Source: Auanema rhodensis (lineage: Eukaryota; Animalia; Nematoda). From it: a DNA stretch of 64,000 bases. The position numbers were made by a program, and so were the translations under genes. The stretch is taken from positions 11,904,001 through 11,968,000 of the forward strand of contig OZ059899.1 of the NCBI GenBank assembly GCA_964057225.1, written 5' to 3'. The notes under the pieces were generated by a model. It searched no databases and was not told where the DNA came from. It was given only the letters and a program-made list of their open reading frames with translations. Shown here piece after piece: positions 14,135 through 53,773 of the stretch; positions within the stretch are counted from its first letter, which is position 1; each line of letters begins with the position of its first letter.

Positions 14135-16421
14135 ATGGACAAATTGTATGAGCAGAGTGGTTCATTAAAAGATGAAGAAAAGCAAGTTGAGGTATGAATG
14201 ATAATAAGAATGGAAAATCAAACATTTTCCAGCTTTTTGAAAAATGCTTATTGAATGTTGCTCCCGGTAAAAACGAAGATATTAGAAACTTGGGCTGGTT
14301 AACTTTGGAACGAATGGTTCGAAGGTATGCATACAGGTTATGATAGTCATAGCGAATTTCTATTCTAGATGTACAACTCAAACTTTGAGAAAAGTGCAGT
14401 CTAGGTTGGCAAAGAGACTGCCTGATATATCAGCTAACCCAAATATATATTCAGGCTTATTTGTTCGTCAACTTTTGATTAAAAATCCTCAGGTATAAAA
14501 ATATTTTAAAAAATTATGTTTATCATTTTTAACTTTTGTTGTTTAAGGTTGGAGATTTACAAACACATGTTATAGATAAAATAATTTTTGATCTTTTGGA
14601 TGCTGGAATTTTTGATGATGATGCTAACATTCGGTTTAAAATATATTTATTTAATACACTGAATTTCGTTTTTTAGTGATCTAGCCATTGATATTTTCGC
14701 TATTCGACATGGAAGTTCCCAATCTGATAGAATTGTTGCTACTATTGTAGGATCCTTGAAAAATGGTTTAATTACACCTGAAGAGAGAATAGGTTTGTGT
14801 TAATTTAAAAGATTAGTTAAAATTGAAATTATTTGTCTTAGGAATGCTACCTTTGGGAGCGGTAGGCTCGAAAAAGGTTAGAGAGCAGTTGATTTGTGCT
14901 GCTATTGATTTGTTCGCACATTCTCTTAAATATAATCGTCAAGGTATTTTATTGTTTGAAAATATGAGATTTAAAATCTGAATTTAGGTTCCACTCTCAA
15001 TCGCGATAATATTTTTAATATGTTTGAAAAAACATTATCTGAACCTTTCTGCTACTCTGCTACTCTTAATGCTATATCTGCTCTCTGCTCAATTAGTAAA
15101 AATTCAATCTTACCATTTGTAAGTTATAAAATTTAAAAAAAATTGTAAATGCTTTATTTAGATTCCCAGATTAGTGTCCATGTTGGTAGTTAATTTAACT
15201 TCCCCTTCCGTCCAGTTGTTTGATACGATGACTGTTATTTGCGAGTTGTATGGTGCTTCTTCTACATTTTATAAGCATTTCTTTGTTATTTTTTCTGCTC
15301 TCAAACGACCATTAGCCCTACAGGTATGAAATCATGAGTTATGGAAAGCGTATGGTTCTTTTAGAGCTATGGAGCAGCAGCTGCGAATCTATTAGGAACA
15401 ATTATTAGGACTTCTGCTCCTATTTTAAAAGCTGAAGTGCTCATTTCTGTTCAGCGTACTATTCTTGAAGAAGCTGTACGTTCTGAAAACTTTGATGTGT
15501 ACGAAAGCGTGTTGGAAGCTATGCTGTCTAACAGTCATGAAGCTGTTCCTGTGCCAGTTCATGTTAGTTGCTTTTTTGTTATTATCTTCATGAGCTGCTT
15601 TTAAGATTGTACGAAACATTATTAATAGACAAATGTCTTCTAATAAGTGCAGATATTTGATTGCTCTATGCGACACCGTTACTCGTCCTCGTTTACAAGT
15701 TAGATATACATTCTCCCATTTAATATTAGCTTTTTTCTTATCAGAATTTAGCAGATTCAGTTGTTAGAAACTTAGCAGCATCAGAAACATCGGCCAATCG
15801 ATTATCGAAAGAAGTAAGTGCTTTCACAAATTATTTTGATTATTGATATTTTCTATTACTCTGTAGGATTGCTTAGAGGAGGAGACATTCCACGAGAAAG
15901 TTCAAAATGTACTCAATGAAGTAAGAGCGTTACCTGTTGAACAGCCTACTGTTATGACAATTGAAGACGAAAAAACCGAAGATGTTGTTGAAGTAGATGT
16001 AAGTGCTTTTGTTTTCTAAAGTTACGCTTCTGCTTAGTTCATAGTGCAACCGAGTTCAGGTACATGCTCTTTTGAAATTAAAGTTCCACGTGTCAGCAAG
16101 TTCACGTCACATTTATTCATTATTTTATATTTTTTTTAATTCTGAATAATCAATTTTATGCATTTTGAAGGTTATTAATGCTCCTGCCCCCGAGCCTGAA
16201 AAAAAGAACGCTACACCATGCCTGGTGCCTCAACAACCCAAACGTTCTGGAAGTGATAGTAATCAAGTTCCCTCTAAAAAGTTGAAGAAAAAGAAGAATG
16301 ACGCAGTTAAGGTAATTTTAACCAATTGAGTCTAAAATTGATTAAATTATTCCAGAGTACTGTTCTAAAAGCGGGTGAAGCATCTGTTGAGGACATTCTA
16401 AGTACTTTCTGTCCTTCATAG
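14135..16421 (+). CDS. PELP1/Rix1-like helical-repeat protein (rixosome scaffold), multi-exon
   Basis: Continuous spliced frame. VYESVLEAMLSNSHEAVPVPVH...LCDTVTRPR resembles the end of the PELP1 Rix1 domain (LLLAPSPRCPPP...CAALTHPR); acidic/Pro linker; C-terminal EDILSTF. Confidence 0.65.
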
Positions 16422-16709
16422 ATTTGTTTTATTTTTTTTTGATTTTGTTGTTGGTTCCTTTGTTGTTATCATTTGTTATTAATCACGAAAATGAAAGATT
16501 TTTCAAGGCAAGTTTATTCTACATCAGTCTATAAAAATAATTGTAATAATTCACATTCAGAACATATGTACAGTTGTTACACAACCACTATTGTAGTTAT
16601 AAAAAAAAAGATTGTGAGAAAAAAGTGGATACATGCAAATTAGATTCAAAAAAAAGAATTATTCTTCAAATAAATTATAAAGATCTTGGTGGTGATATAC
16701 CTGCTTTAT

Positions 16710-18939
16710 CTACATGGCAGCAGCTGCAGCTGTAGCCTGGTTGACTTGTCTTTTCGCATACTCTACGGACCCGCCGAGAACAGCATCTCTGATAAATCAA
16801 AACCTTTCTTTCAGATAAATTTTAATTCTCACCTAGTGACATGGATTCCTTCAATATCACTTCCTGGGACAGTGAACTTAGCATCGAGAAGCACAGCTTC
16901 TAAAATCGAACGCAGAGCACGAGCACCTAATTATAATTGGTAAGAGTGTAAATTACAAAACAAAACTACCTGTCTTTCTTTCTAAAGCTAACTTAGCAAC
17001 CTCCTCTAAAGCATCAGCAGAGAATGATAGGTCAACCTAAAGAAAATCTTCGTTAAAATAGAAAAACAAACAAACAAACATTATCAATAGCAAATTGAAG
17101 CTTTAACTGAGCTAAAAGAGAATTCTGAGGTTCAGTCAATACACGTACAAGCATCTGAATGAAGATTTAATTAACTGTTAAAATTTTAAATACTAACCTC
17201 TGTGTCGAAAGAATGGAAAGGTACAAGAACAGGGAATCTGCCCACTAATTCTGGTACAATTCCAAAATTAATGAGATCGCCTTGATCAGCTCTTAAAAAA
17301 TATTACTTAGAATATTGAAATAAGAGATAACATACTGAGCTAACAGGGAGTCTCGTTTTCTTGCAGCTTCAGAATTGCTGTCATCAGTGGATACCCTTAT
17401 TTCACCAGAAGAAGACCCAAAACCTAAAGATTTCTTATCAAGACGTCTTCCAACAATTTTATCTAGTGTAGTGAAGGCTCCGGATGCAACGAACAGAATA
17501 TCAGAAGTATCAATCTGAACAAATAACATAAAAATATTTTTTTACAATCATTTACACCTGTACTGTATCTTGTTGAGCACCAACACCCTTACGACCACTT
17601 TTAACATTGACAACAGTTCCTTCGACTAACTTCAACAACGCATGCTGTACACCTTCTCCAGAAACATCACGATAAGCAGGAGAATGTCCCTCATGAGCAG
17701 CAGCGATCTATACAACAGTACAATAGAAAAAACTAACAGAAATGTAAGGAACCTTGTCAACTTCATCCAAAAATACTATTCCCTGTTGAGCTCTTTCAGC
17801 ATTTCCTCCTGCAGCTTGAACTAACTTCTGGATTACGCTTTCAACATCTTCACCAACATAACCAGCTTGGGTTAAGGATGTACAATCACACATGGCGATT
17901 GGAACATCGAGAACGCTTGAATTTAGAAAAACAGATTACTAAGAACATAGTATAGGATTACCGGGCCAAAGTCTGAGTGAGATATGTTTTACCCACACCG
18001 GATGGTCCAATAAGCAGAATATTGGATTTCTCAAGTCGAACAGCAGCTTCCTTCTCAGGAATAGAACGAAAAACTGGGGGAGCACGACGAGCAATAGATT
18101 GAGTTGATATGTTAGATATCTGTTGTGACTGAACAAGAAAGCATAATATATTAAAACTGGTTTCACGGTTGTACCTGTAAGTATGGGCTAGGAGAAGAAC
18201 GTAAGTCTGTGGGCGCCATATGGCCTAATCTAACTTCGTCCTTCAAATAGAACAGATGATTAATGAAGACGAAAAATAATTAATCTTACTTGGAACATGA
18301 CCCCACGCGGGAGCTTGGATTCTTCTTTTGGTAAAGGTACAGTGGTTGCTCCAGTTTCAATATTATGCTCTAGTCTCCTATATTAGCATACATTACGTGA
18401 TGTAGAATGATAATTTGTACCGATAATGCTGATAAACACCGACAGCTAATGTTTTCTTGGCTTGCTTTTGTCCAACAACAAATCGATCCAAATAATCAGA
18501 AATCTTTAAAAGATCGGTTAAAATTAGAACAAAAAGATTTTTAAACCTGAGTAGGATAAGGTGGTGAACGTCTTTGTTCCGTTTTTAAATTCCATTGCTT
18601 TGTATTCTCCTCAATGAAATTGCTTATGTACAAATTGTTACAGCTATTGCAGTAAATATAACGGTTAGTTGCTAAAATCATTGGCATAAAACAAATATCC
18701 TTTTTCACAAACTTACGTGTAAATGTGGGGGCAGGTTTCAATGGTTTTTCACAGTACTTACAATTGCCGAAAGAACGAGTTGGCACCTTTGAAGAGCTTG
18801 TAGTTAAATCTCCCCCATTATTGTCTTTATTATTTCCGTTATCCCCGGAATCTGAACAATAGTTTACGGCAAACGGCCGCAACTTTCGGGGAACACTGCA
18901 TCTGCGAGCCAAAAGAAAACAACGCGTTGAACGATGCAT
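16710..18939 (-). CDS. clpx-1: Mitochondrial ClpX AAA+ chaperone (multi-exon)
   Basis: C4 zinc motif (CKYC...CNSC), [17 protein letters not shown] (Walker A), [27 protein letters not shown] (Walker B), [24 protein letters not shown]. Confidence 0.97.
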
Positions 18940-20175: not shown

Positions 20176-22424
<2,249 letters not shown>

Positions 22425-22710
22425 TCTCACTTACCAATTTTGCAGCATTTTTTAACAACTTATCCAAGCTTATAATCTTTTCTACCTTTCTATCATTTAA
22501 TTATTTCGGATGTTTTAGTATTTATTTTTGCTACGGCTAGTCGTTTATCTCTGATGGTTCCTCACATTTGGGTTAATAAACATTTCGGCACTAAAGATTT
22601 ATTTCGTATGAAAAATAATGTACAAAGTTGAGATTAAAGTCTTTCATGCGTAGAAAATTGTATAAAATATATAAAAAAGTTATAATTGTAGAGATAGAAG
22701 TATTCCTGAA

Positions 22711-25818: not shown

Positions 25819-25927
25819 ATGTTCATAATTTTTCTACTTTTTGCTGGTTTTATGCTTTGCTATGTCTCATAATCGGTGATGTCTTTAAAATGCCTTCATG
25901 TTTTAATAAATATGCGATTTTAATTTT

Positions 25928-27629: not shown

Positions 27630-28072
27630 ATTTCATGCTATAAAGATAAGAGTATGTATTGAATTCATAAAAAGAAATCAGTGGAAGTACTTATAAAGTA
27701 GTTTAAGCTTGTATGTATTGTTTAAAAAAGTATATTTCCTTATATTGACGCCAAGTTTATTGGCGTGAACACTGTGCCCAGACCTAATATTACCAAATTC
27801 GATTATAATGGAATTTGCTTTCAAAAAGCATAAAAAAATATGTTAAATGGCTTAAATCTGTAATGTATACTTAAATTATAAATATTATGTGTAACTCTAG
27901 TCTTTATGCTATACGTGAACTTTGACAGGAATCTACGTGAAAGTTCACGTATGAGGCAAAGTCTGTAGCTTGATATGTTTAATTATATTGTAAGTATTTT
28001 AATGAAAAAATCTTATTGACAAAAATATTTATTTAATAAACAAAGCCAAAGAACATAAGAGTTATGAATGAA

Positions 28073-28192: not shown

Positions 28193-30654
28193 GAAGAGCT
28201 GTACGTATAGCTGGAATATAAAATTATTGTTACATAAAGTGAGACGAGAAGAATCAAAAGATGGATTATGATGAATGAGATAGCGAGTTCATTAGCACGA
28301 TTGAAAAGATGGAACATTGAGTGAAAAAGCCAGATAAAATTTTTTATTGGATTATAAATCTTTCAGATTTATTAATATTCGAAAAGAAGAAAGGAGAAAA
28401 GAAAGACGAGTAAGAAAGCTGAGAGAAAGAAGTCGTAAGAGAAGAGTTGAGTGAAAGAGACTCATGCTTTTAAGTAAGTAATTCTAAATAAGAGACTAAC
28501 GAAATACGTTTTCTTCATAAATACGTGAAATATTGTGATTTCTTCTTCATTGTGAATGTCTATTTCATCTTTTGCTGTCAGTTTTTGAGTGAAAATCTAA
28601 TATCAGAACACGATAACAATGAGTTTTCATCATTAACACTATCGTTGTCAGTCACTCATTAGTATCTTTTCTGTTAATTTCGTATATAACATCTCGAGCG
28701 TTGTATCATCAATGAAGATGTAATAGTAACTTCTACTTCTTGAAATTAATCTTGATTCTACTATCTTCATAAATTTCTATTTTTAATTATTTTTTTTTGT
28801 ATTTTTGAGTGTCTTTTCAGCTGGTTTTATCTTCCTCTAGTGCTCCAATTAATTTGAATTAATTTTATTCTTTTTCTTCCATTTTTTTAAATTTCAATTC
28901 TAGTCAAGTAAATGCCAGAGACAGAAAAATGATAGAAAGAAATGGAAAAAATAGATCGTAGAATAGCGAGAAAACAAAAAAAAAATATTTGACATGGTTA
29001 AGTAAAGAAGAAGAAATAGCTCCCATCATACTGATGAGTTTTTCAATGTTATTAAGGTTTTTGGTAGTTAAAGAGTGAGGGAAAGACGTCGTAAGAGCTA
29101 TAGTGCTTAAAAATTAGTTGAAATATTAGCTAAGCGAATACGTTTCAAGAAAAAGTTTTAAATGCTTTGTTCAGCATATGACCATTCTGAGTAGTTTTTG
29201 AACTTTGTTTCAGTATAAGTGTTGCCCCTTGTGATGGAAGAATAAAAGGAAGTGGCAGTCTGTGAATTGCGAGGAACACAGTTGAAAGATGATAGAACGA
29301 TTATGTTAGTTAAATGACATTTCATCTGCATTTGGTCCGAAACGAGGACCGAGATTTCCAAACGCCCAGAGAGAGCATCACTATGTAAGTGGAGATGACG
29401 AGAATTAGAGAAACAAATCGTGAGAGAGGGTTGTAACGGAGGATGGAAGAGGTAAGAACTTCGGCTAAAGGACATAGAGCAGGAAGCTTCTGAGTCACGG
29501 CCTCATCACGCTCTTCAAGTCTTTCCCCCATTATGGAGACAATACCGCTCCAGTTGAATGCAATCTAAGCTTGGCTTCGACTTATCCCCACAATCATAAA
29601 CTTTCTTTGGCCTCATTGTACATCATATCCGCGTGAAATGCTTAAAATGTCACGGCTAACTTTTATTTTTCCCAAAACTTTCTTCTCAAAGCTGAGCTTT
29701 TGGATTGTCTGATCGTATTTCACTTTCCATCTTTCATCTGCATTATTCATTTCAAATTCGAATGAAATATTCGTCAATGATAGAAGAAATTTATTTATAA
29801 AAAGAAAGTATGATAATGATTTACAAATATTATATTAGAATAATATTTGTTCGATGACATCATATCCCATTTTCCTCCTCACGTGTCTTTAATAGTTTCT
29901 TTTAAATTTTCAATTTAAAATAATGGATATAATCTATGTGTATGAATGTATTCACATTAGATATCTACCTCCAGGGATTCTGAATAAGCTATTTTGTCCT
30001 TATTGGGAACAATTAGAGGTAAATTCAGAGTGATACAAGAGTGGCTGCCGTATATAATAAGTTAGAGAGAGGTGTGTCTTATACACATGCAGCCTTCCCA
30101 CTCACAACTCAAATCTCAATACTTAAATCTGCTTGTTTGTATGAAGCATAGTTTAATATAAACTATGCGTTATGCTATTTGAAAGGATAGGCTACTAATA
30201 ACTTTTTTCTGCCAATTTATATTCTTCCGGTTCAAACCGATAATGGATCAGAGCTCAGAGATTTCAATTTTCAATAGAAATTACATATTTTCTTCAACAA
30301 AAATCATGTTGGCTGTCATATTGCATGCAGCATAGGAAGTCGACAAACTAACAGAAACTCTTTTAAAATCTTTTCTCTCAAAGCTTCGTAATAATTAATT
30401 GGACATTCGTTTAAAAAATAGTTGTTTTGTTATTATCATTCATAACAAACCTATGCTTTAAGGTTCAATTAAGTTAAACAATTATGTTTTCGTGTTTGTA
30501 GTACGCGTTCATATGTGAGATGTGATTTCTTAACCTCATATCCGGTATAGCTATTCATAGTTATATATAATAGAAGAAACGTTCCAATACATAAACTTGA
30601 AAACACTATTCTGAGTACTAGTGCAATGCTCTTAGTTTTCTTTTAATCTTTTCT

Positions 30655-30711
30655 ATCTCTCTCTCTCCCTCTCTCTCTTTCTCTCTCTCCCTCTCCCTCT
30701 CTCTCTCTCTC
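30655..30711. repeat. Imperfect (CT)n microsatellite
   Basis: Seen directly; a shorter tract lies at ~31256-31281. Confidence 0.9.
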
Positions 30712-31250
30712 TTACACATTTGCTCTCCACTTCCATTCTTTTATTCTCTCCTTTTTCTGTTCTTTCTGTGTTGTTCTCCGCTTTGTCTATTCTTAACCTT
30801 GTTGTGTCTGTTTTTTCATTTCTATTAATATTTCAAAACAAAACTCCCCCCTTTTTAGTTTTTTAGTTTGATTACAAAGAGTTTCGAGAAAAACTCTTGA
30901 AAATCCGTGCCGGCATAAATTTTGTCATTTCTGGGCAAAAAATCAACAAAAAAGGCAAAAAACTCTTTAATATTAAGTTTGTCTCTTATCTTTTATCTTC
31001 AATTATTATATTTATTTCAATAAATGATTCCTATTTTTAGAGATTTAATATCGGAACCAATTTTCATTTTTTAAAGGAAAAGCAAAATTAAAATATAAGT
31101 TTTTCATTTTTATCAAAGTTTTTGTTTGATCGTTTTTTCATCTTTCAATTTTATATTGTTAATATCTTCATTTTTTTTTGGAAATATTAGTTTTCCCTTC
31201 TAAGCCTATTTCTTTCATATTACTTCCTCATTTACCCATTGTCGTGTTCT

Positions 31251-31281
<31 letters not shown>

Positions 31282-31622
31282 CTTATTAGATGCTTTATCA
31301 ATTTGGTTTTTCATCATCAGAAGCAAATTTTTAATAAGTTTTATTTACTTAATAGCTGATTTAAACTTTTTCTGGAGAGATAATGAAACATAAGTTGAGA
31401 CTAAAGGAGCAAGTAATGGAATATTAAACAAATACTGAGAAGCTCATTCACCAAACTCATTTCTATTCCAGGATCAAATACCTTTCATTTCCTTCTTTTC
31501 TTTTTGTTACTATTTTTTATTTTTTTTCTCAAATTCTATTTCTACTCATTCATATTCAATTCATTTTTTCCAGGAAGATAAGCAATGCGATTAGACTGGC
31601 TATATCAGATCAGAAGCAGAGA

Positions 31623-34600
31623 ATGAACGACCCAGACGATTTGGTATGAGTTGAAATCTCAGATTATTTTTAAAAAAATTCTTATAAAACATTTTTTCTA
31701 AAATTGATGCCAAGAAGGAAAAAAAATCTTTTTTTCAGTCCTCATTATTGTAGTAGAGAGATATAACTAGGGATGCATATATTTTGTTTTTTTTTCTTCC
31801 TTGAATCTGATCACTCTCTCTCTTTTAGCCAATTTCAGAAAATTTCGCTAAATCCGGAAGTTATGTAGAAGAGGATATTGCGTGCCTTATCTAGTCTCTG
31901 AAACTTCCATTGTTTAATGCTTCATCTTATTCGTTGTAGGACCTTTTGTGTGATTGTAGGACCTTTTGTGCGTAGAAAAGTAATAGTTGAAGATGATCAT
32001 AAGAGCAACCAACATTTCTCTTTTGAAAGTCTTAATCAATTTCGTGTTCCTCTCCCTTTTTCTCCATTTTACTATTCATTTTATTGAGATTTGTACTTCA
32101 ATCAAATCTCTGAAGCATCAATGTTGTTCTATCAATCGTCACAGCAACAACATACTCATTTCGCATAGACTACAATACATCCACATAGATGAATGTATAT
32201 GTACATCTATACATACTTTTCTTCATTTTCTATGGATTTTTCCTTATTTTTTTATGTTCGAACAGAAAAGATTTTTTTTTTACAGCCAGATGGGATAAAA
32301 TCAAATTTTCTCTCAATGAACTTTGAATCGGGACAAAAAATGCTTGAAAGAAGCTCTAAACATCTGCTTAATCCTTTATATCTTCCATTGAGCAGACATG
32401 AAAACATGAAACTTTTGAATAAATTTAGAACCATAGTATCCACGTGAGATATACATACGTGTGTGAACATACACGTATCATTTTGCATTTTAGTTGTGTG
32501 TGACGCAGATAATCGGTTGGTTTTTCATAAGTTATTTCATCTGAATAGATATCTATATGCATATTTGATGAAATTAGAAATATAATTAAATTCTTGTAAA
32601 AACAATATTTTTGATTTAATTTTACGAAAAATTTGAATTTTGGCTCTTATCCGTCTTCGACTTTTTTTTCAAATTTGAAAAGCTGCTAGTAATGGATTAT
32701 GAGAAGCCATCAAACTCAGGTTTTTTTTATTCAAAAAATTCCATTTAGGGTAATAATGTGGAAGAGACGAAACGAAGTTAGCTTGAAAACCCATAGTTTA
32801 GTAGCTTTTTAGTGTTTTTTAAATAGAAAATGTGGAAAATATATTTTCAATCACATAGTAAAGAATTGAAATATATTTTTTGGTTGAAAGAATCTAGTAG
32901 TATGATCATGAATATGTGCTTTATCTCATGCTTTTCTTCTTTTTCGTTGCTTCTTATGAAAACAAAAAAAAAAGAAATTAATTTTCTTATAATTCATTGT
33001 AGAATACGATGAAACGAAACTGATGATCATCGTCATCTATTTCACATCTGAATCTTCTTTTATTTGTTTCTCAGAGTTTCTTCTATGAAACTGGATATTA
33101 GAGTCTGAGTTTTCCTCCTTTATTTGGCATCTATAGGCTACTTCTCGTATCGTTATTCTTTCTATTGCATCATTGTATTGTATATTCAACCTTTCGAACA
33201 TATCTAACTTTCTAACTAATTATATTTCATTTTACTAAGAAAGAAGAAGAAAAAAGAAGAAGAATATTATATAGTTAGTTATAATATTTATAAAACTTAT
33301 TAATTATTACAAAATGACATTCCCATAAACTTTTATAACAATCATCTAACCATTGTTCTCTATTCTGAAAGATAAATTAGCTGGCCATTTAAAGTAAAAT
33401 AGTCGTTTAACTACTTTAAAGAGAAAGATTCTTCTTTTCAATAACTTCTTTTCTTTCAAAAAAAAATGAAGAAAAAGAATGAAAAATTCCTTTTAAGCTG
33501 TACAAACTATGATTTACATGATGTAAATAATCTTAGTTGTCAACTATTTTGCCTTAGTAGAACTCTGTGTCTATATGTTTGTATTTCAGGTAGCAACATT
33601 CAATTCAAGATTGTATGAAACTAATAACAATATTATTATAAAATCTACTAGGAAATACAATATATTTGGAAGATCGTATCATAATTTCAAGTTCATTATG
33701 TTTATAAATGTTTTATTGCTTGTTCATAATGCTGTATTAGCTTCTGAAGAATATGGGTAAATTTCTTTTTTTTTGTTGTTAAGTTATTATATAATTTTAT
33801 TCTTTTTATTATAGATATGAAAAGTTATTGGATGAACAAAGAATTATTCGAAATTTATTGGAACGATCTGATTATGATTGGCGAGTTCGTCCACGTGGCA
33901 CGTTGGACCAAAATCTTCAGGAGCTTGAACAACCAGTGAAGATTGTTGCGAACATGTACCTCAGGTTTGTTTTAAACAACTTTCAAAGCATTTAAAGAAA
34001 AAAAGAAAATTTGAGAATAAGAGAATTCAAATGAATAAGCATAAGTACATGATCAAGTTCAAAGATTAAAACCTTTATTTCAGAAGTATATCGAAAGTAG
34101 ATGATGTAAATATGGAATATTCTTTACATTTCACATTTCGTGAAGAATGGGTTGATGAACGTTTATATTTTAATAGTCCAACGTTAAAACATATTGTTTT
34201 ATCACCAGGACAGAAAATTTGGGTAAAATTTTCTTTTTTTTTTTAATTAAAATTCAATGTCTACAGGTTCCTGATACATTTTTTCAAAATGAAAAAGATG
34301 GAAAGAAGCATGATATTGATACTCCAAATATCTTAATTCGTGTTTATAATGGAACAGCTCGTATTCTATATTCTTGTCGTTTAACTTTAACATTAAGTTG
34401 TCCAATGAGGTTTGATTTTTTTTCTTCTATTTCTTAGCTTAAATGTGTTTGTTGCTTGGGGGGATGGGTGTAGTTAAAGGGGGGGGGCAGGGTTCAGCAA
34501 TATAGAAAATCTAAGAGAAGTGGGGAAGAGTGAGTGTTTAGTAGTGTATTACAGTAATTTTTATTTTGTTTTTGAATTAGAAAATATTTTTATTGTTTGT

Positions 34601-35784: not shown

Positions 35785-36683
35785 AATATATAGAAACGGG
35801 TGATGGCTTCTGTTGGATGTCCAAATTTCAAGAAATACCATATAATATTCTTTTTTTTTGTTTTTACTTTAATCTATTCAAGTTTAGAAGATTTTTTAAA
35901 GTTTTTTCTAAGTTCAACTATATCATATCAGCATTTTCTGTTACAAGAAGCTTAGATATTTTCCTTTAATACTATATGCTTATCATTTGATCAAAGATTA
36001 TAACAGCTTGTTATCAGTTAATATGAGTGAGCTATGATGATGAGATGTCTTTTTTCATAAAAAAAGAATTATCTAATATATATGTTTTACATATAAATAT
36101 CATATCTTAACGATATTTATCATTTTTTTTTATTTTTAAATAAATAATTTACATCCAAATGTATTACTGTAAATCAAATTGCAGAATAAGTTTTACATTA
36201 TAAACTTAAATTGAAAATATGAAATAGATGTTATAAAACTTCAATAAAAATTCTTTAAGATATGATTATATAATTATCTCTGATTAGCGTTATGATAGGA
36301 ATATTCTCTGAAATTTCAGAGATTATCTAATAGAAGGGCGTTGTCTGACATGACATGCACATATGCTGCTTTGAATTTCAAAATAAGAGAAAAGCGAAAA
36401 AAATCAGCCGATAACACTGGAAAGTGAATATGTCCGAGAGCTTTTTATTATCTTATTAACTTCTTTTCGACAATTTCAAACCTATTATGACTGCAAAAGC
36501 ACGCTATTTGCTTAAATGGGTGTGGCGTTCAAGATGAATTACACAGAAAGTTCTTCGGATGCTCCTCATGATAAGAGCTTTCAGACATAAATACTCTTCG
36601 TCTCTACCAGGCTGCATTGTAGCATCATATGAACTGTATGTCATACAGAAGAACAAAAGAGAATTGAAAATCTTAATGTAGAC

Positions 36684-36756
<73 letters not shown>
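36684..36756. repeat. (GA)n microsatellite
   Basis: Seen directly. Confidence 0.95.
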
Positions 36757-37079
36757 AACAGAGGTAGATGAAACACTTATCAACTGACAACAAGATGTAT
36801 ATTGATTTTTCCATGTAGCTTAATGTTATCATGTCATTTTAATTTCAACTCTGACCTCATTAATACATTGTAAGCTATTGATTCAAGATTTTTTAACTAT
36901 GCTATTTATAATTAATTAAATTTCAATAATGTTTCAAATATTTTTTTTTTAATTTCAATTATTAGTCACCTCTTAAGTTGATATGAGATATCATTTTTCA
37001 TTTACATTTTTACTCATTTTCATCCTCTTTTTTTCGTTTTTCTTGTCTTAACAAAGTTTTTATTCTATTATTTTAAAGA

Positions 37080-40000
37080 ATGGAAGCTTCAATAGCTATT
37101 ATTCAACATTCTGCAACATATCGTAATAATCATTTCCCAACGTCACCCCAAGATTATGACATCATTGTATTAGATGAACCGTCACGTCCAAGTACAAGTT
37201 ATCAAAAAAATATAACAGAGTCAAATGTATATATTATATTTTAATTTATTAATTTATTAATTAATTTTAAAGCATTATATAACAAAAAGAAGAACTGTTG
37301 GTAGTATTATGAAATTACCCTATGTTATAACTTCCGATAATGATACTAGTTTATCTGAATCTGTACTTCAAGCTGTTTATTCAAAAACTAGGTTAGAATA
37401 TTCCTTTCCTTGATTTTAATAATGTTTTCTACTCAAGATTACAAATGAATCGAGCTGTTCCTGTTCCATTATTTGATGATCGTTCTAAACAAAATATTGT
37501 TAAGCGTTCTTCCATCAATTTAAAAGTTGGTACTATTCTTATGTGTGTACCTGTTCCTTCAAAAGGTTTTCTGTTTTTAAAACTGTTTCTTATCAATATT
37601 TATAGAACGTTTCAACTATCCTTATGGCCGTCCTGAAAATTTAGCTCGTTTAGTTCATTATTCTTTGAATTTCCCTGAACTTTTGGATGTTCAAACACGT
37701 CACATGATCATTCGTTTTGAGGAGTAAGTTTTCAATCTAAATCGATTTCTAGATTCAATCATGAATATTAGAAATTCCAAGATTTGACATGTGTAATCAA
37801 TAAACTGTTTAGATGGTTAGGACATGCACAACTATCGAGTAATCTCTTCCTTCCCTCATTATTCTCCGTTCCTCCAGCCAGACTTCGTATCTTATGTTGT
37901 GTTCATAATCCAGCATTTGTTTGTGAAAATTATAATGGATGTATCAATGATAAACGAAGGTATATCATATATCATTTTTCTTCAAAAAAGCTTTTAAAAT
38001 ATTTTTTTTCTCAGGGGAAAAATGGAAAACTCTCGTAACATTAGTGTATCATTTGATTTAGATGATAAAGTTCGTATCGGAAATTTAGCGAGAGTTAAGT
38101 TAATATCATATAATAAATATAATACATTAATTATGAATCCATTATTTGGTCTTCAAATATCAAATGTTGAAAAAGTAAGTTAATCAATAAATCTATATGA
38201 ATAGTTTATATTTTATGTTTTTATTATTATAGAATATTCCAAATTATTTTGTTTTGGGATCAGATAATCACAAAGATGAAGCAAATACTGCAAATTCGTT
38301 AGTAAAATCTGATGAAAAAACTGATTTTGCCCTTCGTTATCCATTACATTATGCTGCACTGAAGGATGATATTGATTCGATTAAGTATTTCATATATTTC
38401 TTTTAATTTTTATTTAAAAAATTATTTTTGAAGGCATTTAATTCAACGTGGACATGATGTTAATGAACGTGATCGTGATTTATGGACTCCATTACATTAT
38501 GCTTGTTTCTATCGCCAAATAAGAGCTACAGATGCTCTGCTTACTGGAGCCCGAGCTGATGTAAGTATATCAATCTTTCTAGTTTATCTGAATATTATCT
38601 TATGCAACCGTTCTAACACTGAACTATTTTCTGAAAATCAAGCCAACTATTTTGGAAAAAGTTCACGTGAAACTTGATTTTTTTATGCTAATTAGTCATT
38701 ATATTGATTAAAGGTTAATGTGCGGAATAAAGGAGGTTCAACAGCACTTCATATGGCTGCCATAAACGGAAATGAATATCTTATCGAACTATTACTGAGT
38801 CATCCGAAGCTCGATGTTGTAGGTTTTTCTTTTTAAAAATATTTATTAATCTTAGTTATTATAATATACATATTATCATCACAGTATAAAATACGATAAA
38901 AGGCAAGATAAATTATAATTAATTATTTTTATAGCCTAGGGGCTATCTTTTTTTTTTTGTTCGCAAGAGCTTAGAAGACAAATTAAAATGATAACGGGCT
39001 TACTGAGAATGAACTCATAGATGAACATGAAAAAGTGTGAAAAGTTGTTTATTTTAGAACATTATGAATAATGAAGGACGTACGGCATATGACTTGTGTG
39101 CTGCCGATCCAAAGCCAGCTTATCAGACTTGTGCTTTTCTACTTCGAGAAGTAGCTGTACCAAAAAAAATTCAGGTTCGTAAATCTTCTTATTAAATTAA
39201 TTTAGATTGATGCTTTTCTTTAAATTAATCTTTTGACTTCTTTGCGTCACAGGTTGATTTAATCAATGGCGGTACTTTGATGGTACTACTGTCACATGGC
39301 CGAGAAACAACTGCTGGGAGTATTCTTAAACAAATTGCCATCGAGTTCGAAATCGATGCATCGGCTTTATCAGTCTTTGGATTATGGATATATTCAGATA
39401 ATCTTAGTCAGTTTCTAATAATTTATAAGAAAAGCACAGTTGAAACTTAAGGTGTTCAATTACGGCCAGATATGAAAGTTTGGCCAAAAATAAAGAATTG
39501 GCCACAGTCAGTTGTTGAATACTCAGATGGTGTTCTAAAAGAAAATGAGCAAGGAAAACTAATATTTCGAAGAAATGCACATGCTAGTCAGGATAATGAA
39601 CATGAGGTAAGTGATTGAGCTTTCAAAAAAAAGTTGAAAAAATCTTGTTCCCTTTATAAAAACTTAATTAACTCTAACTTGACTAGACTAGATAATTTTA
39701 AAACAAAGCAAAAAACATTGACCGGACATATGTTAACCCACTATGAGCAAAATGAAAATAATAATAAAATGAAAGCTCACAAATAATCTTTCGTTCTTTT
39801 TTCTTTTTCTTTTAATTTTTAAAATATAATGTTTCGAAGAAAAAAGGCAATTGAAAGCGATGTGATTAGAAAATTATAGCTTTTCGATGTATGATTGATA
39901 CAATCTCCATTTGGACATGCTTCACTGCAAACCTGTAAATAATATAAACTCAGTTTCTTTTTCGTTTGGGGACCAATTAACCTCCACAAATACAACAGCG

Positions 40001-43000
40001 CTTTCTCTTGGCTTCGATATATCACTACCAAAATCTGTATCCCGATTGATAAGATGACGACGAACCTATAGAATTTTAATAATTTTAAAGAATTTTCTAT
40101 GAAAGTACAACCTTTCGCTGAATAATTTTCGAATTATAAATGGTACATCCAGTAGCATCTTCTGGTCCACCACATTTTCTCTCCGTAACTGTTCGAACTG
40201 AAAATTAAAAAATAATTTTGTTTACATATGATTAGTTATATGATGACATGGTATCCTACAATTAAATATAATTATGTTTCTCTTCATATTCTATTGTATA
40301 AATAGAATATGCTTGTCACATCTTCTTTTCCTTATTGTCTAATTTCTTATAAGATTTATAAGTATTAATTAGTATATATGTAAAGGCTATTATATGTGTC
40401 GGGACGTTAAATATCCCCCTCTGTGACGACCCGACATCTTTCTTTAACATATACAACAGTAGCATACACATGTATGAACACTAACTAACTATTTCCCTAT
40501 TAGTTGAGGTCATTGACAGCATTGTTGGCATTAAGCCAGAATATTTTCAAAATATATCAAAATATTTGTTCTCATGAGACATATCATATAATCATTTGTG
40601 CAAGACAATGATGGATTTTAATTATATCATATAGTTAATCTCTAGAGATCATGTACATATCGTTGATACATATCTATCTATGTATATATTTCTTTTTCTA
40701 AACCTTTGTATTTCTCAGCTAAAGCGTTTGATAACTAAAAAGAAAAGTTTTACCTGATGCTCCACCATTACGATACCAACTAACAATACAATGAGTATGG
40801 CTTGAATTCTGGCATTTAGTTGGAACTATAGCTCCTTGTTGGCAAGCTTCAACATGTTTCTCGTGTTCTTCCTCGGAATACCAACCACTATGTTTATCAC
40901 ATTGAATACAATGTAATGAATTTGCTAAAACAGTAATCATCATCATTCAAACAAAAAGTTTTTTTTGAATATTTAGTAGCATACGTACGCAGTTGTGTGA
41001 TTAGGCTTTGTTATTGAAATTCTACGCAGGTGGCCTGCACTAAGATTTTTGGAAGAAAAAGTTAAAAGAATATAGGACATATGTTCATTTGCGCTAAATT
41101 CTTTGTTTTTTTTATTTCAAAATTATAAAAACATAATTACTAATCGACATTCTTACCGTAATGTATAATACAGACGATTAGAAAAAGGAATAATTTCATT
41201 CTTACTAAGAAGATTAGAAAAGACGAAAAGTTGAATTGAATTCCAAATGAGAGTTTGATCTGAAATGAAAATGTTTTTTTTTGTGGAAAAACTTGAATAA
41301 GATGTAAAATAAATCATCAAGAATATAATATAATTACGAAATAATATTTAATAACTATTTAAGATGAATCAATTTTGCCAATCATTGCTATATCATGAGG
41401 CTGAACAACACTTCTTGTCTGGAGGACTTCCCGCTCTTCCTGAGAAGACTATTCTCAAGCTGTCAGCTATATTAGCTCGAATACTATATGGAGATATGAC
41501 GAAAACAATGTAAGATTTTTTCAAATTTTATACAAAAAATATGCGAAAAAGCTGAAAACCGACTGTAGCGAATAGAGAAATATAGAGAATAGCTGGTGAA
41601 TATTGAGATTAGTGGGATGTAATATGATCAGAGCTCAAGAGAAATGTTCACGAATGGCCTTTTTGAGGTGAGAGGTAAATCAATGCAGATGGTAGGATTA
41701 TGATGAAAAAAGAGTAAAAGAATTGGAATAAAAGAAGATAAATGAAGTGGACATAGAAATTGTTTGAAAAATGAATATTAAAAGTGAATATATGTACATA
41801 GATAGAAGGGGAGGGATGAATGGACAATATAATGAGTGTAGGAGGAGAGGAAGGAGGTTAAAATGAAGAAAAGAGGCGGGCAGATTAGAAAAAAATAGAA
41901 TTTTTGTCATCTTCACTCAGACAAAACATGAACGAATGATTAAAGAAGGAAGAGAAATAAAAATAAAACGAAACAGCTTCTGGTAAAAGGTAGTTGATTG
42001 GCTAGTTGAACACTGGGTCAACGGGGCAAAAATTAGCTTAAAAATGAAAATTAGACGAAGCTTGTCCACTTAACTACATGTACTGCTTAAATGAAAAAAA
42101 AGCTTAAACATTTGTACTCATCGTTTAAGTTAAAAAGCTTTTCTTTTTGTTTTTTCGACAAAAAAAAAAGAAAAATAAAGGAAAAAACTCAATTGTGGTG
42201 GTCTGCATAGCAGTAGTTATTAGCATGGGCTAGCAGAGCAAGCATCATCATCATCATAGCCTCATCATCATCAACATGCTGTAGCTTTAGCTTTCATGTT
42301 GGAGCTCTCATTGCAATTTTGCTTTTGATTTTACTGATACTATTGAATGAGAATGTCGAAACATGTAGTATCGTGTGTTAGCGCATAAGTTAATTAAAAC
42401 GTGAATATATTTACTTGAAAGGATCTGATGGTCAATCCGTCTTTTGAATTATTCTATTGGCTACTCATCCAAATATCTCTTCATCCATCTCTCTAGTCCT
42501 CTCTCTCTTTCTCTCCCTCTCTCTTTTAACTCTCGTATAGAATTATCTATAAAAATGAGTCGAATCATATAGTAAAAGTAAAATTGAAATATCATAGATA
42601 TATATTTGTATATAAAAAAATAAAAAAGACCAAAAGTGACTGCAATCCTATGATGCTTCACATGCATGCAACCGCTCACTTCGACTAAAATATCCCAAAT
42701 GAAATAGCAAAGGATGTTACACGTGAAATAACGTGAGTTATTGCTATTATATGATAATTTGGATTAAACTTTAATGACGCAAATCAAAATATTTCTAAAT
42801 GTATGCTCAGCTGTCAATTCGAATTATAATATACAGGTCATGAAGCATAATTAAGAAATTATTGTATTAAACATATAAAAAAACGAATGAAAGTAGATTT
42901 TTTATGCTAAGTTTACACAAAATACTGAAAGGATTACGAGATGCTCAAAATAAGGTTTTCGGATGTTTCTATACCAACTCTTGCAACCCCATGAGCTCTT

Positions 43001-44313
43001 CAGTTGCGCACTATGACATGCAACGGATTCTTGCCGCCAAATAGGAAAATCGGCTTATCTAGAGCGAAGCGTAAAAAGATGTTAGATATAAAGCTCAAAT
43101 TTTGAATTGAAAATGAAGATTCTGAAAGAAAAAAAATCTCAGTTTATCCGTCAAAGTTTTTCTTCAAATTGTTGAAACTTGAAGGAAGAATGATTGTAAT
43201 TTCTGCTGATATATTGAGAAAATCAGAAGCAGAACCAAATCTGTTGAACATAGGATTATAAGCTTAAAGTATCATCTCACGGGAATATGTATGATCAGAT
43301 ACATCTTGATGAAGTTTAGCGTCTAAAACCTGATAAAGCTTGAACTAAGGAAGAATGAAAAAGACAACAAGTTGGGTTATATATAGGAAAAGTGCTCCAA
43401 GAAAGTACCTTTGAAAACAGTCATTACACAGAGAAAAACTAAAAAAAGAAAGAAATAGAGTAAGAAACTAGAAGAAATAGAGGGAAAGAGAAAGAACAGA
43501 AGAGAATGAACGGAAAATCATAAAACAAGAAAGCTATCAGCAGATATTTCCATTAATAGCTTACTTCCTTTTATGAATAAAGCAGTCTGTTCAAAAGCAC
43601 ATTAGAACGACATGTCAAGTTCTCTTCACAATGCTATAAACTATATATTCTATATATTTAAAAAATTGTAGAAATCATATATTAAACAAAAGTATCGTTT
43701 TGGTTTTCTGTGTAAGACCATATTTAAATGTATCTTGATGGTTCTTATACATAACCACGATAAAGCTTATAAGAATTGTTTATGTTCTATTCCATGAAGG
43801 TAATGAGCATGGGAGGTATGGTTTGTATAGAAGTCTAATTAAACATATGTACATATATCCCAATAATAAATGGATATTGTTTATAAATATAAACAGATAA
43901 ACAAAATTTTGAGGAAATATAAGAAGATAAAGAAATGAAATTCGGATTGATTTAGAGATATTATAAAGAATAGTAGCAAAAGGTAAAGAGAAGCCTAATA
44001 CCATGTTCTCCAATAAAATCTCATCGACCCTTACTCCTTTAATCTCTCTTTCAGTCTCATTCTCTCTTTCTTAGTCAATGTCTTTCTATCCAGTCTTCTA
44101 TCTCTTTCTCTATTTCTATTTCTCAGATTAATCTGGTCAATCCTGGCCAAATAGTCAATGTAGACAGCCTTAAAGCATTATAAGGTAAAATGTGTCAGAT
44201 ATAAAGGAAAAAGTATGTAAGGAAGTAAGCGGATTGAATAAGCATCTCATAATAAGGATTAGAAACCATCATTACCCTGGTTTATTAATTAGCATATATC
44301 AATAGACTCACAC

Positions 44314-44352
<39 letters not shown>

Positions 44353-44632
44353 TTTTCTCTTTCCCTCTCTATCTGTCTCTCCATTTTTCTTACTTTCTAG
44401 GTTACTCAGGATGACTAACCTAACACATCCTTAGGGGTCAAACGGATGAGGTTGAAAGCTCATGGAAAATCCAATGTTTATAAAAGGTTGTCTGCTGCTC
44501 TGCTTTAGCCCTGCATTCACACCTCCCATAGGGGTAATGGTATGATGATGAGGGTCAAAGACAACATTGGTTTAGATGAGGGAATAGAGGGCAAGGAGGC
44601 AGGTGTCATCATCTCCTATAACAAACTATTCT

Positions 44633-44688
<56 letters not shown>

Positions 44689-45371
44689 TCCTCTTTCTCT
44701 CTCTCCCATTCAAACTCAGCTTATATGGAATATTACCAGCCGTATCAAATATTAGACTACCGAAATTAGCATATTCTAATTTGGTGTCAGATTGATCTAT
44801 CTATCAGAAAATTTTGAAATATAGAGATCTACATGTATACGGATATTCAAGGTATAATGAAATGTTTTTATGTGAAAATTTATGGGAAAAAAACTCAAAA
44901 TGGAAAGATGAGAGAATCGGATTGGTTAGAAAATATGAAAGGTGTGAATTGAAAGATCATTATTGACAGGATAGAAAGAACAAATATTTTTTGAAGAAAT
45001 CAAATAATGAAATACATGAAGAAGACATTATGAATATTCTTAAGATTTCTTTATTGAAACATTTGAATATGTCATCTATGTGACAATATACTTCTTTCTT
45101 TTATTTAAATTTCAATATATTTACAGAATATTTTTATTTAATTTGAATAAATATTCGAAAATCTGTCATAATCTCTAATCAAATAGAGAATATTGATCAG
45201 CTAGTTTCTTTCAATTTCACGCTGAATCTAAGTATCGGTTTGTTTCATTTAAATTCTGAATGCCAAGTTGAACGGTTGTTCTTAGAAATACGAAAGCATC
45301 CCGTTTTCTATTTCGAAAGCCCAATGAAATTAAGACACATTCTAGGATTTGAACTCTTAGTTACTTATACA

Positions 45372-45415
<44 letters not shown>

Positions 45416-45834
45416 AAATATATGTATATTGTGTTCCATTTATGGTTATAGATTACATGGAAAATGAATTGTGAATTTAAGAATATGACTATGAACGAGG
45501 GAGAATGAGAGTGCAAGGAAGTATGAGAAGGAACGGATAGGGAAGCTTGTAAAAAGAGTAGCTGAAACAGAGAGAATGAGAACTAGAGAGAGAAAAGGGA
45601 AGGGAGACTAATTATATGTTTGGGCTTGTCATATTGTTCCTCATCGTTGTCTTTTCCTTTCTTGATGACAAACCGTCGTCACAAAGCTTCATGAAGATGT
45701 GTGAATGTATTTGTAATTAAATAAATTAATAAGTTTTTAAGTTAGAAGAAATTGAAACAGTAAAATCTTATGATAATGATCTTAATATATCAAGATCAAT
45801 TGAAAGCAGTAAAGAGAGAGAGAGAGAATAAGAA

Positions 45835-45885
<51 letters not shown>

Positions 45886-48800
45886 GAGAAAGAGAGGGAG
45901 AATTGATGGTGGATGTGTGTGAGAGGTGAATAAGAGGTTGAGATTGAAGAATTCGTTAGTATGTGACACATCTGTCATATGTCTCTGTATAATATATAAT
46001 GGTAATGGTTAGAATACAGAAGATAGAAAACCAGTAAAAATGGATTTTAATGATCATCAGGTGGCCATTCGAATGTCTGTTTTTAGACTGAAAAGAACAA
46101 AATGAAATATAAAATTTACGGTATGTCTATGAAAGACTTTGAAAAAGTTTCAAAGTAAAAGAAAAATATTAATTTAAAGAAAAAATGTTTACAAAGTTGG
46201 TAAAAGCGGAAGAACCTAGACATCTTACTTACTTGAATGTCCGATAATAAGTTTGAAGTTGGAAGGATAGGAGGAGTTTAGATGGATGATAGACTGAACG
46301 TTGCCAACACGTGCATAAGAGAGAAGAGAGAGAGATATGACTGGAAGGATAGATGAATAGAAAAGCCTAAATAAAGTAAATGGAAAGAAGATATAAGTAT
46401 GTATATGGTTGTTGAACAAGATGAGAAAATAAAATTTTAATAATTTTTCTTGAAAATTAAATAAATTTTTATGAGAAAATGAGTATAAGTGGATAGTATG
46501 TGAAGGAGATAGAATAGATAGAAAGGATAAGATCATATAGTATAATAATGAAAATATACTATATGAATATGTAAAGAACAACCGTTCAATTTGATAATAA
46601 TATCAAAAAATAAATTTTAAAAGATTGACGTGACTGTTCACGTAAATTTGATTCAAATGAAATGAAGAAGATCTTAATGAGATTTGAAGAGATAAAGATG
46701 AAATAAAGTATTATTGACTTTGCACGGAGCCAGGCCTGAAAAGCCACTCCAAAACATTTTCTAAGAAGCACAATCATTAGAAAGTAGATGTTGATGATGA
46801 TGTTGATGATGATGTAGTAAAAAGTCCAATAAGTGCATGTATTCATTGTATAAGTTAGTAAGAGTAAAATAATTATAATATTATCACAATAGAAATTATT
46901 GTAAAAACAGCATTATCTAACGTTTTCAAGTTTTTACGAATCGTATGGCTTAATGCATGCCATAATCTTCGTTTCTTCAGCTAATTCAAGACTTTTTTTG
47001 TGAAAATCTTTAAGACAAATTATTTGAAATGAAGGAAAATGTATTGCTGTGAACTAATTCTGTATCCAATTACTTTCTTTAGTTGAAAAAGAAGAGTTTG
47101 GGGGCAAAAAGAATGAAAACGAAGAGTATATAAGGCTCACTAAAGGCTGAAAACTATTTATTTTTCTTCTGTTCAACAAAGAGAGATCAAAGAATAGAAT
47201 CTGCATTATACTTCTTAATATCAAAATTGAGAAAAACGGGAAAAACTTGGGTTAACTAGAGGAATTTAAAGAAATTCCTATGAATACCACAACTATGCTC
47301 CAACAGTGGCTTGGGTTCAAAAGCTTAGAATCGGATGTTGCTTTCAAATTTCATGTATAAAAGGAATTGCTTTTTGGATGAAAGCTGCCGACAGATCTTT
47401 CAGATGAGTCCACGTCTCTCTCTTCTCGCTTAGACAGATGAATAAGTGAGCGAGTGAGAGAAAAAGAGAGGCAGGGAAAAAGAGAAAGAGGGAAATAGGT
47501 TAAAATCCAAAAGAGAAAAAAGAGAGAGAGAGGCAAAAAGAGAGAGAGAGAAACTTAACTGGAGGGATCAACTCAACTTTCTAGAGAAGAATTTCTCTTG
47601 TATGTACGTCGTTCATCTTTGTAATTCCTTTCGTCAACGTAAAAATGTAAAAATAGCCAAAAATTGAAAAAAGTTTATAAGAATGGAAGGATTAGATAGA
47701 CATTTGTCAACACACTAACTATTAAAATGAAATATTCGTTTAGTTTACTATAGCAAATTGAGATGAGAAATGATAAATGATGATGGTTATGACTCGGGAC
47801 AAAGCCGAGAAACGTTTTCGAGAATTTGTAAAGGGTTAAGAAGTTCAATACCGTTAAAACCTTGCAAGAAAATAGAAAGATATTCCAATCTCTTTGAGGA
47901 ATGGCAGCCTAAGAGACTGGGAGGAATGGCAGAACGAAAGGATAGAGAACAGAAGGTATTGGTGCATGGGAGGACCTGGGGTACTTCTTCAGCTGTGGTC
48001 AATTTCAGGACAACACATGTTGCCAAACAGGTTGTGAATGCTGGTGAATTCGCAATTAAGTCCTTCTGATGACAAGCCTGGTCATAGAGAATGAGTCTTG
48101 AAAATGCTCTCATTGAAATCATAGATGTAGTTAGCTTTCAATGCTCAACATAGCTTTTTCAGCTGGAAATAAGTTTTAATTTGAGGCTTAAAAGAAACTT
48201 TTCCTGCTTAAACAGTAATTTGTCAGAAATCTGCTTTCATGTCTGTCTGCTTCTCTACCTTTCTCTTCTAGTTCCTCGTTTTCTCGATCTCTCATTGTCT
48301 TCGAAATGCTCAAATTATAATATTGTAAATAGAATTTGAAGTTTAAATATTTATTGAAAATCATTTATTACATATAGTAATTGAAGCGTGATTGAACACG
48401 TGAACCTGAAGGCTTTAAAGAGCAGTCGTCCGGAATTTCGATCTGACCGCATCACAGCCGGAAAAGGTTGGCCGGAAATGCCCCTAGGGCATTAAGTTTG
48501 TTCATGCTGACTGACCTACGAGCTTTCTCTCTCTCTCTTCCTCTTTCTTTCTTTTTTTCTCTCTTTCTCTCTCGCTTTCTCTCTATCTCTAGCTTTCGTC
48601 TTTGCTTGTTGCTGTGCATCAGAATCGTTCGCACTTGAGGTTATTTGACTATGTGGTAGCTTAAACCACCCCGAGAGAACAATAAAAGACCATATATGGT
48701 AAATTGCCATCAATGGAACATATAACAAAGTCTAAAGAGCCAGATGAAAGACATAGAATAATGAACGATAGGCTCTTTCTGATGCTTGGAGACATCAATG

Positions 48801-50930: not shown

Positions 50931-51794
50931 ATACACGAAAAGCATTAAACAAACCTAAAACAGATTGTGATCTTATTTGCATAACTTTTTAAAGTATAGA
51001 ATATACATGAAGATGATCATTCCCGCAATTTTTTAAGATATAATTTATTACATGTATATATTTATATAATTATATATAAAAATATTGTATTAACTGAATA
51101 TTTTTGAAATTTTAATAAGGAATATACCCTTTTACGCAATTTTCACGTACAATTCATACACATTCTTTATAAATTAAACGCACAGAGAGGTTGTTTTTCA
51201 ATTTTAACAATATCAATAATAATCATACATCAATATACTCATGTTCATATGTGTATTGTTTATTCTGAAATACTTAAGTTCAAAAGATTTTGAACTTGCA
51301 TAAAAACTCTTATAACGAAAAGAGAATAATGTTTTTTTGCAATTTCTATTCATTTATAAGAGTTCTATCCATTTTGTAAGATATTCAAGCTTTTATTCTT
51401 TGTCAATTTCAACACAATAGCTTAAATCATCTTGATATTCGTATTTTTTTACGTTATATCTTTAACCCGATAATTCATAAAACTAAATTGAATCTGAAAG
51501 AGGGACAAATATTAAATTAGATATACGTAGCATTATTTTAATAAAAATATATTTCTTCACAAATCATACATCATGATAATCAAATGCACAATCATAAAAA
51601 CACAAAATATCGTCCCATTTTGAATTTTGGCTTCAATAACATGTTATGATGCAAACTATATTCTTTCTTCCTTTTTTTGAAAGCTACAACGTACAACTTG
51701 AAAACAAATGACTGAATATCTTGTAATAAATTCGTTAAATCTGATGAAACACTAGTTCAATAACTAGAGGATCTTGTTACACTGAAATGTTCTC

Positions 51795-51875
51795 ACGTCA
51801 TTCACGTGTGTCACGTGTGTCACGTACTCATTATATTTATTCAAAATAATAATTTCTGTGAAACGGTTGGTTTCA
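51795..51875 (+). promoter_or_regulatory. Four TCACGT units at 9-nt period plus CGGTTGGTTTCA upstream of the multipass membrane gene
   Basis: ACGT at 51795, 51804, 51813 and 51822; CGGTTG at 51864. Confidence 0.6.
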
Positions 51876-51929
51876 AGCTTATATCACTTTATTTATTATT
51901 AAAACCTCAGTATATGTAGTTTTTAGGAA

Positions 51930-53696: not shown

Positions 53697-53699
<3 letters not shown>

Positions 53700-53762
<63 letters not shown>

Positions 53763-53773
53763 GAGAGTGAGAG
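53700..53773. repeat. (GA)n microsatellite downstream of ppk-1
   Basis: Seen directly. Confidence 0.95.

Follow-up and report, generated by a model that had tools for sequence, protein, structure and literature searches.

What kind of element is formed when the hexamer CAACCG and an ACGT core recur at a nearly fixed distance, mostly in introns, within one stretch of nematode DNA? The stretch analysed here, called the window, comprises 64,000 nucleotides (nt) of the Auanema rhodensis genome (assembly GCA_964057225.1, contig OZ059899.1, positions 11,904,001–11,968,000, forward strand) and has an AT-rich, nematode-like base composition (GC content 0.327). An earlier reading of the same letters (the original prediction) had described a dispersed two-part element and proposed it as a male-germline mini-promoter for short RNAs. 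The observed element is confirmed and is refined here to a three-part oriented cassette, a rigid module of about 70 bases present in seven to nine copies in the window. We consider it probable that the cassette is a TATA-less RNA polymerase II (Pol II) core promoter consisting of an initiator and a downstream promoter element (DPE), with an activator box at −30.

Anatomy and copies of the cassette

CAACCG or its complement CGGTTG occurs 12 times in the window. Four occurrences (8116, 8487, 9480 and 18166) are apparently coding, as called from reading frames without gene models, leaving the eight non-coding hexamers that had been reported. In a recount, all six hexamers named in the original prediction have an ACGT at 57–62 nt on one side: the distances are 57, 60, 62 and 61 nt for CAACCG on the + strand at 16047, 38605, 42669 and 46579, and 59 and 62 nt for the − strand hexamers at 32519 and 51869. 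A second ACGT at 41–53 nt is present in five of the six, as described, and the hexamer at 49183 (previously numbered 49184) does not fit the element. Two suspected degenerate copies were also recovered, one near 45219–45278 (hexamer at 45273, with CACGC replacing CACGT at the expected distance) and one near 51134–51200 (AGGTTG at 51188–51193). The extended cores are those given before, namely CGGTTGCA (three times), CGGTTGGTTTCA and CGGTTGGTTTTTCA.

Motifs, spacing, orientation and positions relative to genes were read directly from the DNA. In the direction from ACGT to CGGTTG, the parts are one or more ACGT boxes at about −30, an initiator TCATTY at +1 and a downstream box (box B), (G)AACGGTTGY, at +24 to +33. 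The ACGT box has the consensus TCACGTGAAC(TT) and is of the E-box or cAMP-response-element (CRE) type; it is often doubled and once occurs as four tandem copies 9 nt apart (51795–51825). The hexamer sits in the longer box (G)AACGGTTG, and the next letter is C or T in 5/7 copies. The spacers had been described as unrelated; no alignable blocks are present in them, but a fixed initiator-like (C)ATTT lies about 26 nt before CGGTTG. The two-part element is real, oriented and promoter-like, and the initiator-like match between its boxes makes it an arrangement of three parts. The copies, referred to below by the first base of the hexamer, are as follows.

16047–16107, − strand: cassette 1, antisense in the 172-nt intron (15999–16170) of a PELP1-like + strand gene; CGGTTG 16052–16047, predicted A+1 at 16078 in TAATTT (5/6 initiator match), ACGT at 16088 and 16104.
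38605–38668, − strand: cassette 2, antisense in the 153-nt intron (38561–38713) of a kri-1-like (ankyrin) gene; box B GAACGGTTGC, initiator-like TGATTT displaced by two nt from exact spacing (predicted A+1 at 38636–38638), box TCACGTGAAC at 38663–38672.
42669–42734, − strand: cassette 3, inside the large kri-1-like intron and antisense to the gene; TCATTT is perfect, its predicted A+1 (42700) putting GGTTG exactly at +28; ACGT at 42721 and 42731.
46579–46643, − strand: cassette 4, likewise within the large kri-1-like intron and antisense; ACGT at 46628 and 46640, initiator-like TTATTT displaced by one nt (predicted A+1 at 46610–46611), box B TGAACGGTTGT.
32442–32519, + strand: cassette 5, sense, with a ligand-gated channel gene downstream; ACGT at 32442, 32457 and 32473, GCATTT initiator with predicted A+1 near 32487–32488, box B 32514–32519.
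51795–51875, + strand: cassette 6, sense, upstream of a + strand open reading frame (ORF) with ATG at 51930; four ACGT at 51795–51825, initiator-like TTATTC with predicted A+1 near 51838–51839, box B AAACGGTTGG at 51861–51870.
45218–45278, + strand: cassette 7, sense in the kri-1-like intron, upstream half degenerate; CACGC at 45218 for CACGT, perfect TCATTT with predicted A+1 at 45247, box B TGAACGGTTGT.
51145–51193, + strand: degenerate copy; ACGT at 51145, AGGTTGT at 51188–51194, the initiator ACATTC exactly spaced from it (predicted A+1 at 51162).
48386–48470, + strand: possible degenerate copy; GCGTGA and ACGTGAAC boxes at 48386–48405, AGGTTG at 48465, spacer unusually GC-rich.

Around the last of these, the stretch 48400–48515 is GC-rich and contains repeated CCGGAA following the GCGTGA and ACGTGAAC boxes, ending near AGGTTG. 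It contrasts with the AT-rich spacers of the other copies and has no Rfam match. A perfect 12-bp inverted repeat (46533–46566, − strand, fold z = −4.2), located 18–52 nt downstream of the 46579 CGGTTG, is unique to that copy.

For the assessment of chance, every complex hexamer was combined with every complex tetramer in 6-nt distance bins between 20 and 150 nt. CAACCG–ACGT at 57–62 nt was the top pair of the whole-window scan (6/12, expected 0.15, p = 1.3e-8). The best pairs in nine block-wise dinucleotide shuffles of the window reached p-values of 4e-9 to 2e-7, so the pair count alone fails to beat the look-elsewhere effect. Flanks were examined in seven copies anchored on CGGTTG and read from ACGT to CGGTTG. 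GTGAAC adjoining ACGT was found in 4/7 copies at −57 to −51 from CGGTTG (p = 4e-11, still significant after correction for about a million tests), ACGTG in 5/7 at −61 to −55 and ATTT in all seven at −32 to −23. At the five non-cassette CGGTTG sites of the window the ACGT partner, the initiator match and the other flank features were all absent. The pattern is judged not to be due to chance because of this flank consensus, the sharp separation of cassette from non-cassette CGGTTG sites and the initiator at a pre-specified offset described below. (CT)n/(GA)n microsatellites are very abundant in the window (208 CTCTCT hexamers; for example at 30636–31390, 36507–36776, 44509–44766 and 53672–53917) and swamp any naive spacing statistic.

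Fit to a proposed initiator and downstream promoter element

In the fly core promoter, the functional range of the DPE is DSWYVY at +28 to +33 and the 3′ end of the motif ten element (MTE) is AACGS at +25 to +29 (PMC4581360, Table 1). If CGGTTG contains a DPE, the first letter of the initiator TCAKTY (−2 to +4) is predicted to lie precisely 28 nt upstream of the C in CGGTTG. TCAKTY was scored in the seven copies at all 54 offsets from −60 to −7 relative to CGGTTG. The score was maximal at −28 (sum 30/42), which places the first G of GGTTG at +28; the runner-up was −29. At offset −28, TCATTT is perfect in the 42669 and 45273 copies and matches at 5/6 positions in the 16047 copy, and ACATTC stands at the exact spacing in the degenerate 51188 copy as well. 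A match of at least 5/6 lies within two nt in 7/7 copies (random-anchor p = 5.6e-7). With random anchors in the same region, a sum of at least 30 at a fixed offset was obtained 0 times in 200,000 draws, and two or more perfect TCAKTY matches had p = 1.4e-4. No general initiator peak was present across all 79 GGTTG sites of the window; the association is specific to the CGGTTG cassettes.

The letters of the downstream box agree in part with the same assignment. GGTTG fits the DPE range in 7/7 copies and GGTTGY in 5/7, and AACGG corresponds to the MTE 3′ end at +25 to +29 in 4/7. The whole MTE, CSARCSSAACGS (+18 to +29), is matched at 9/12 positions by two copies (counted by hand). No TATA box (TATAWAAR) was seen in the cassettes at −31 to −24, and, with the start so predicted, one ACGT box of each copy lies at −29 to −34, in the TATA-box position. 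We favour the core-promoter reading because the TCAKTY score peaks at exactly the offset that places GGTTG at +28. The original prediction had compared CAACCG to a Myb-type site and ACGT to half-sites bound by SAND proteins; CGGTTG appears to be better explained as a DPE with the MTE 3′ end, at +25 to +33 of an initiator, and the ACGT boxes as E-box/CRE-type activator sites.

A cassette of this kind would fire in the direction from ACGT to CGGTTG. Its ACGT boxes (−29 to −34) would bind an activator, probably of the basic helix–loop–helix or basic leucine-zipper type, the initiator TCATTY would mark the transcription start, and (G)AACGGTTGY at +24 to +33 would be contacted by TFIID as are the fly MTE and DPE. 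This downstream contact with TFIID would fix the ACGT–CGGTTG spacing at 57–62 nt. The copies upstream of genes (51864 and probably 32514) would act as gene promoters, and the antisense intronic copies would start unannotated transcripts, possibly short or paused. Transcription start at the cassettes, the reading of the box by TFIID and the production of RNA are what we infer from the motifs.

A promoter without a cassette, belonging to a gene for an MSP-domain protein at the end of the window, provides a comparison.

63271–63365, + strand: comparison promoter; four ACGT boxes at 63271–63303, TATATAAG at 63314.
Its downstream parts: TCATTT, whose A+1 at 63345 places the TATA box at −31, and the ATG of the MSP-domain gene at 63363.

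The sole homologue found for the MSP-domain exon is in Auanema sp. JU1783 (53% identity), and the gene order ppk-1, leucine-rich-repeat gene, MSP-domain gene is common to the window and that species. The JU1783 promoter (L001 9920–10003) contains CACGTCA, CGTGAG and TTCACGTGAG boxes, after which come TATATAAA (L001:9962), TCATTC (its A being 9992) and the ATG (10001). Both promoters thus consist of an ACGT/E-box cluster, TATATAA, TCATTY 30–31 nt later and the ATG. Because this layout is kept in both species, both motif types are taken to be used in ordinary promoters of the group: TCATTY is very likely a working initiator in these nematodes, and the ACGT boxes are, judging from the conserved layout, promoter-proximal activator sites. 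The cassette is absent from the 20-kb JU1783 locus, a sample too small to prove lineage restriction. Searches for homologues of two further ORFs of the window gave no match.

Several points weigh against the core-promoter reading. The initiator-to-DPE spacing is exact in only 3/7 copies, off by one in 3/7 and off by two in 1/7, and exact spacing is required for DPE function in flies. The 5′ half of the MTE is not conserved in the cassettes, and we know of no described core-promoter element that corresponds to an ACGT box at the TATA position. The reading is built on seven to nine copies in one window, and 4/9 copies face antisense into host exons without a gene to serve. Sequencing runs of apparent RNA origin contain almost none of the words of the intronic stretch 42000–48000, and four such runs contain 0.61–0.70 of those of 51700–58200; these shares fit intronic and exon-rich DNA, respectively, and are uninformative on short RNAs. 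For Caenorhabditis elegans, start sites are reported to be without enrichment of DPE and MTE (PMC3730108); the core-promoter reading, if correct, would be exceptional among nematodes and is to be taken with caution.

Alternative explanations

A composite binding site or enhancer without initiation of its own, made of a Myb-type CNGTTR and E-box/CRE sites, would have its spacing held by a protein complex, for regulation or chromatin architecture. CGGTTG, often as AACGGTT, fits the Myb core CNGTTR. Like activator sites, the ACGT boxes occur in clusters, sometimes in tandem, and further clusters are found without CGGTTG at 27913–27950 and 63271–63303. Such a site leaves unexplained why an initiator stands at the exact fly initiator-to-DPE distance, why a pyrimidine follows GGTTG and why two sense copies lie just upstream of genes; we regard it as unlikely. 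The palindrome ACGTGAAAGTTCACGT is part of the cluster at 27913–27950, which is not accompanied by CGGTTG on either flank. ACGT clusters can also stem from coding constraints, since two overlapping ACGTG (codons for RVRPRG) lie in a coding exon of the ligand-gated channel gene at 33893–33903. Among other known sites compared by eye (RFX X-box, Grainyhead AACCGGTT, Pax, nuclear-receptor half-sites and forkhead), none suits all copies. The literature found for CGGTTG, AACGGTTG and CAACCGTT consisted of primers only.

Alternatively, the cassettes could be the lineage's mini-genes for PIWI-interacting RNAs (piRNAs) or other short capped RNAs, as was originally proposed. In published nematode piRNA loci, the 21U RNA starts at YRNT and is preceded by a GTTTC core at a distance of about 42 nt; melting is high from the start to +19 and low from +20 to +40, and GC-rich downstream sequence reduced piRNA output (PMC6436959). 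With CATT serving as YRNT, the U would fall at +3 and the GC-rich box would stall Pol II, yielding precursors of about 28–35 nt. Like Pristionchus-type loci (PMC6436959), the copies are scattered over both strands and lie largely in introns; most have no gene to serve, and CATT is found in 3/7 copies (AATT, TATT or GATT elsewhere). Set against this, GTTTC has no fixed place about 42 nt upstream: GTTTCA occurs only in one or two copies, after CGGTTG in one and in the spacer of another. Mean GC of the cassettes rises from 0.26 (predicted start to +19) to 0.41 (+20 to +40), the reverse of the pausing signature, and two copies suit ordinary gene promoters. Mini-genes of this kind are rated as quite improbable; short-RNA output from the cassettes is possible, but is not the best-supported reading.

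The other parts of the proposed germline role fared no better. No sequence pointer to a SNAPc/Myb site was found, and Rfam gave no gene of the small nuclear RNA type downstream. No known RNA gene was detected at the copies with Rfam (E ≤ 1) and ARAGORN, and no common RNA fold was found across the element or in the 143 nt downstream. Nothing in the window sequence points to SAND/SPE-44 binding or male-germline use.

That the copies are relics of a mobile or intron-creating element, the two boxes being its conserved ends, is very unlikely. Two introns (15999–16170 and 38561–38713) are largely one cassette each and, at 172 and 153 nt, about three times as long as a neighbouring intron of about 45 nt; the hexamer lies 48 and 44 nt, respectively, from their 5′ splice sites. 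Alignment with MAFFT gave a mean column identity of 44% and no alignable blocks beyond the motifs; no terminal inverted repeats, target duplications or shared fold were seen, and both orientations occur, also outside introns. A repeat family was ruled out by the same alignment, because the copies fail to align outside the two boxes and the ATTT-type initiator, in agreement with the earlier view of a pair of protein sites. Selection of a chance pattern by eye, for which the equally small p-values of pairs in shuffled windows could be cited, is scarcely credible in view of the flank consensus, the pre-specified initiator offset and the clean split of CGGTTG sites.

Neighbouring genes and comparison with known systems

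The 51864 copy has its predicted start at 51838, 92 nt before the ATG (51930) of the + strand ORF; another copy, degenerate and of the same orientation, precedes the 51864 copy by about 650 nt. The 32514 copy is sense as well; downstream of it come a possible signal-peptide ATG (33698) after about 1.2 kb and, after about 1.4 kb, the exon of the ligand-gated channel with YDWRVRP (near 33.87 kb). The element had been described as mostly intronic: this holds for the 16047, 38605, 42669, 46579 and 45273 copies, but the 32514 copy may be the promoter of the channel gene rather than part of its first intron.

Antisense to their host genes are the 16047, 38605, 42669 and 46579 copies. Transcripts of the two copies in short introns are predicted to enter the upstream exon antisense. 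Both of these introns split the coding sequence between GAT and GTTA; this shared context is probably due to chance, because GADVN is the usual codon context in the ankyrin gene. The large kri-1-like intron also contains, in antisense, a cysteine-rich ORF beginning MMMITV (40722–40946, − strand), with a weak RING-H2-like Pfam match (E = 0.0034). Lying about 1.75 kb downstream of the start predicted for the 42669 cassette, this ORF could be a nested gene that the cassette serves. The orphan antisense copies raise the question of what they transcribe. Were they to yield short paused RNAs, this would bear on the origin of piRNA-like mini-genes.

Three known systems can be set beside the cassette. 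Ruby-motif piRNA mini-genes, in the Pristionchus-type organisation, are likewise autonomous short units with promoter character, spread at high density through introns and over both strands, and the cassette initiator could serve as YRNT. The cassettes differ in having no GTTTC core at the standard distance, a GC-rich downstream box instead of a low-melting region and an upstream ACGT box instead of a SNAPc-derived motif. They could have taken over from Ruby-motif piRNA genes in this lineage, or constitute a novel type of short capped RNA gene. Pol II would then be started and stalled by the combination of an activator box (−30), an initiator compatible with YRNT and a DPE- or pause-button-like box (+25 to +33), and thousands of intronic sites would release precursors of about 30 nt; we hold this to be improbable.

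Ordinary TATA promoters, represented by the MSP-domain gene, share with the cassette the TCACGTGA-type boxes directly upstream and the same TCATTY initiator. The MSP-domain gene has its boxes farther out, at −45 to −74, has a TATA box at −31 and lacks CGGTTG; in the cassette the ACGT boxes occupy about −30, and the downstream box takes the place of the TATA box.

To our knowledge, fly-type downstream core-promoter elements are held to be absent or unimportant in nematodes. If the core-promoter reading is true, the fly promoter grammar would be more ancient, or reused more widely, than has been assumed, and thousands of start sites would be predictable from sequence alone in this genome, for which no protein annotation came to light. 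The cassette differs from the Drosophila initiator and MTE/DPE promoters in its nematode host (start sites in C. elegans being without DPE/MTE enrichment; PMC3730108), in a spacing that varies by one or two nt in four copies, in the absence of the MTE 5′ half, in the ACGT box at the TATA position and in that many cassettes are orphan and antisense in introns. It resembles them in the TCAKTY-type initiator, the absence of a TATA box and the rigid spacing of the parts, and in the downstream letters themselves: GGTTGY falls within DSWYVY with its first G at +28, AACGG occupies +25 to +29, and a G is found at +24 in 4/7 cassettes.

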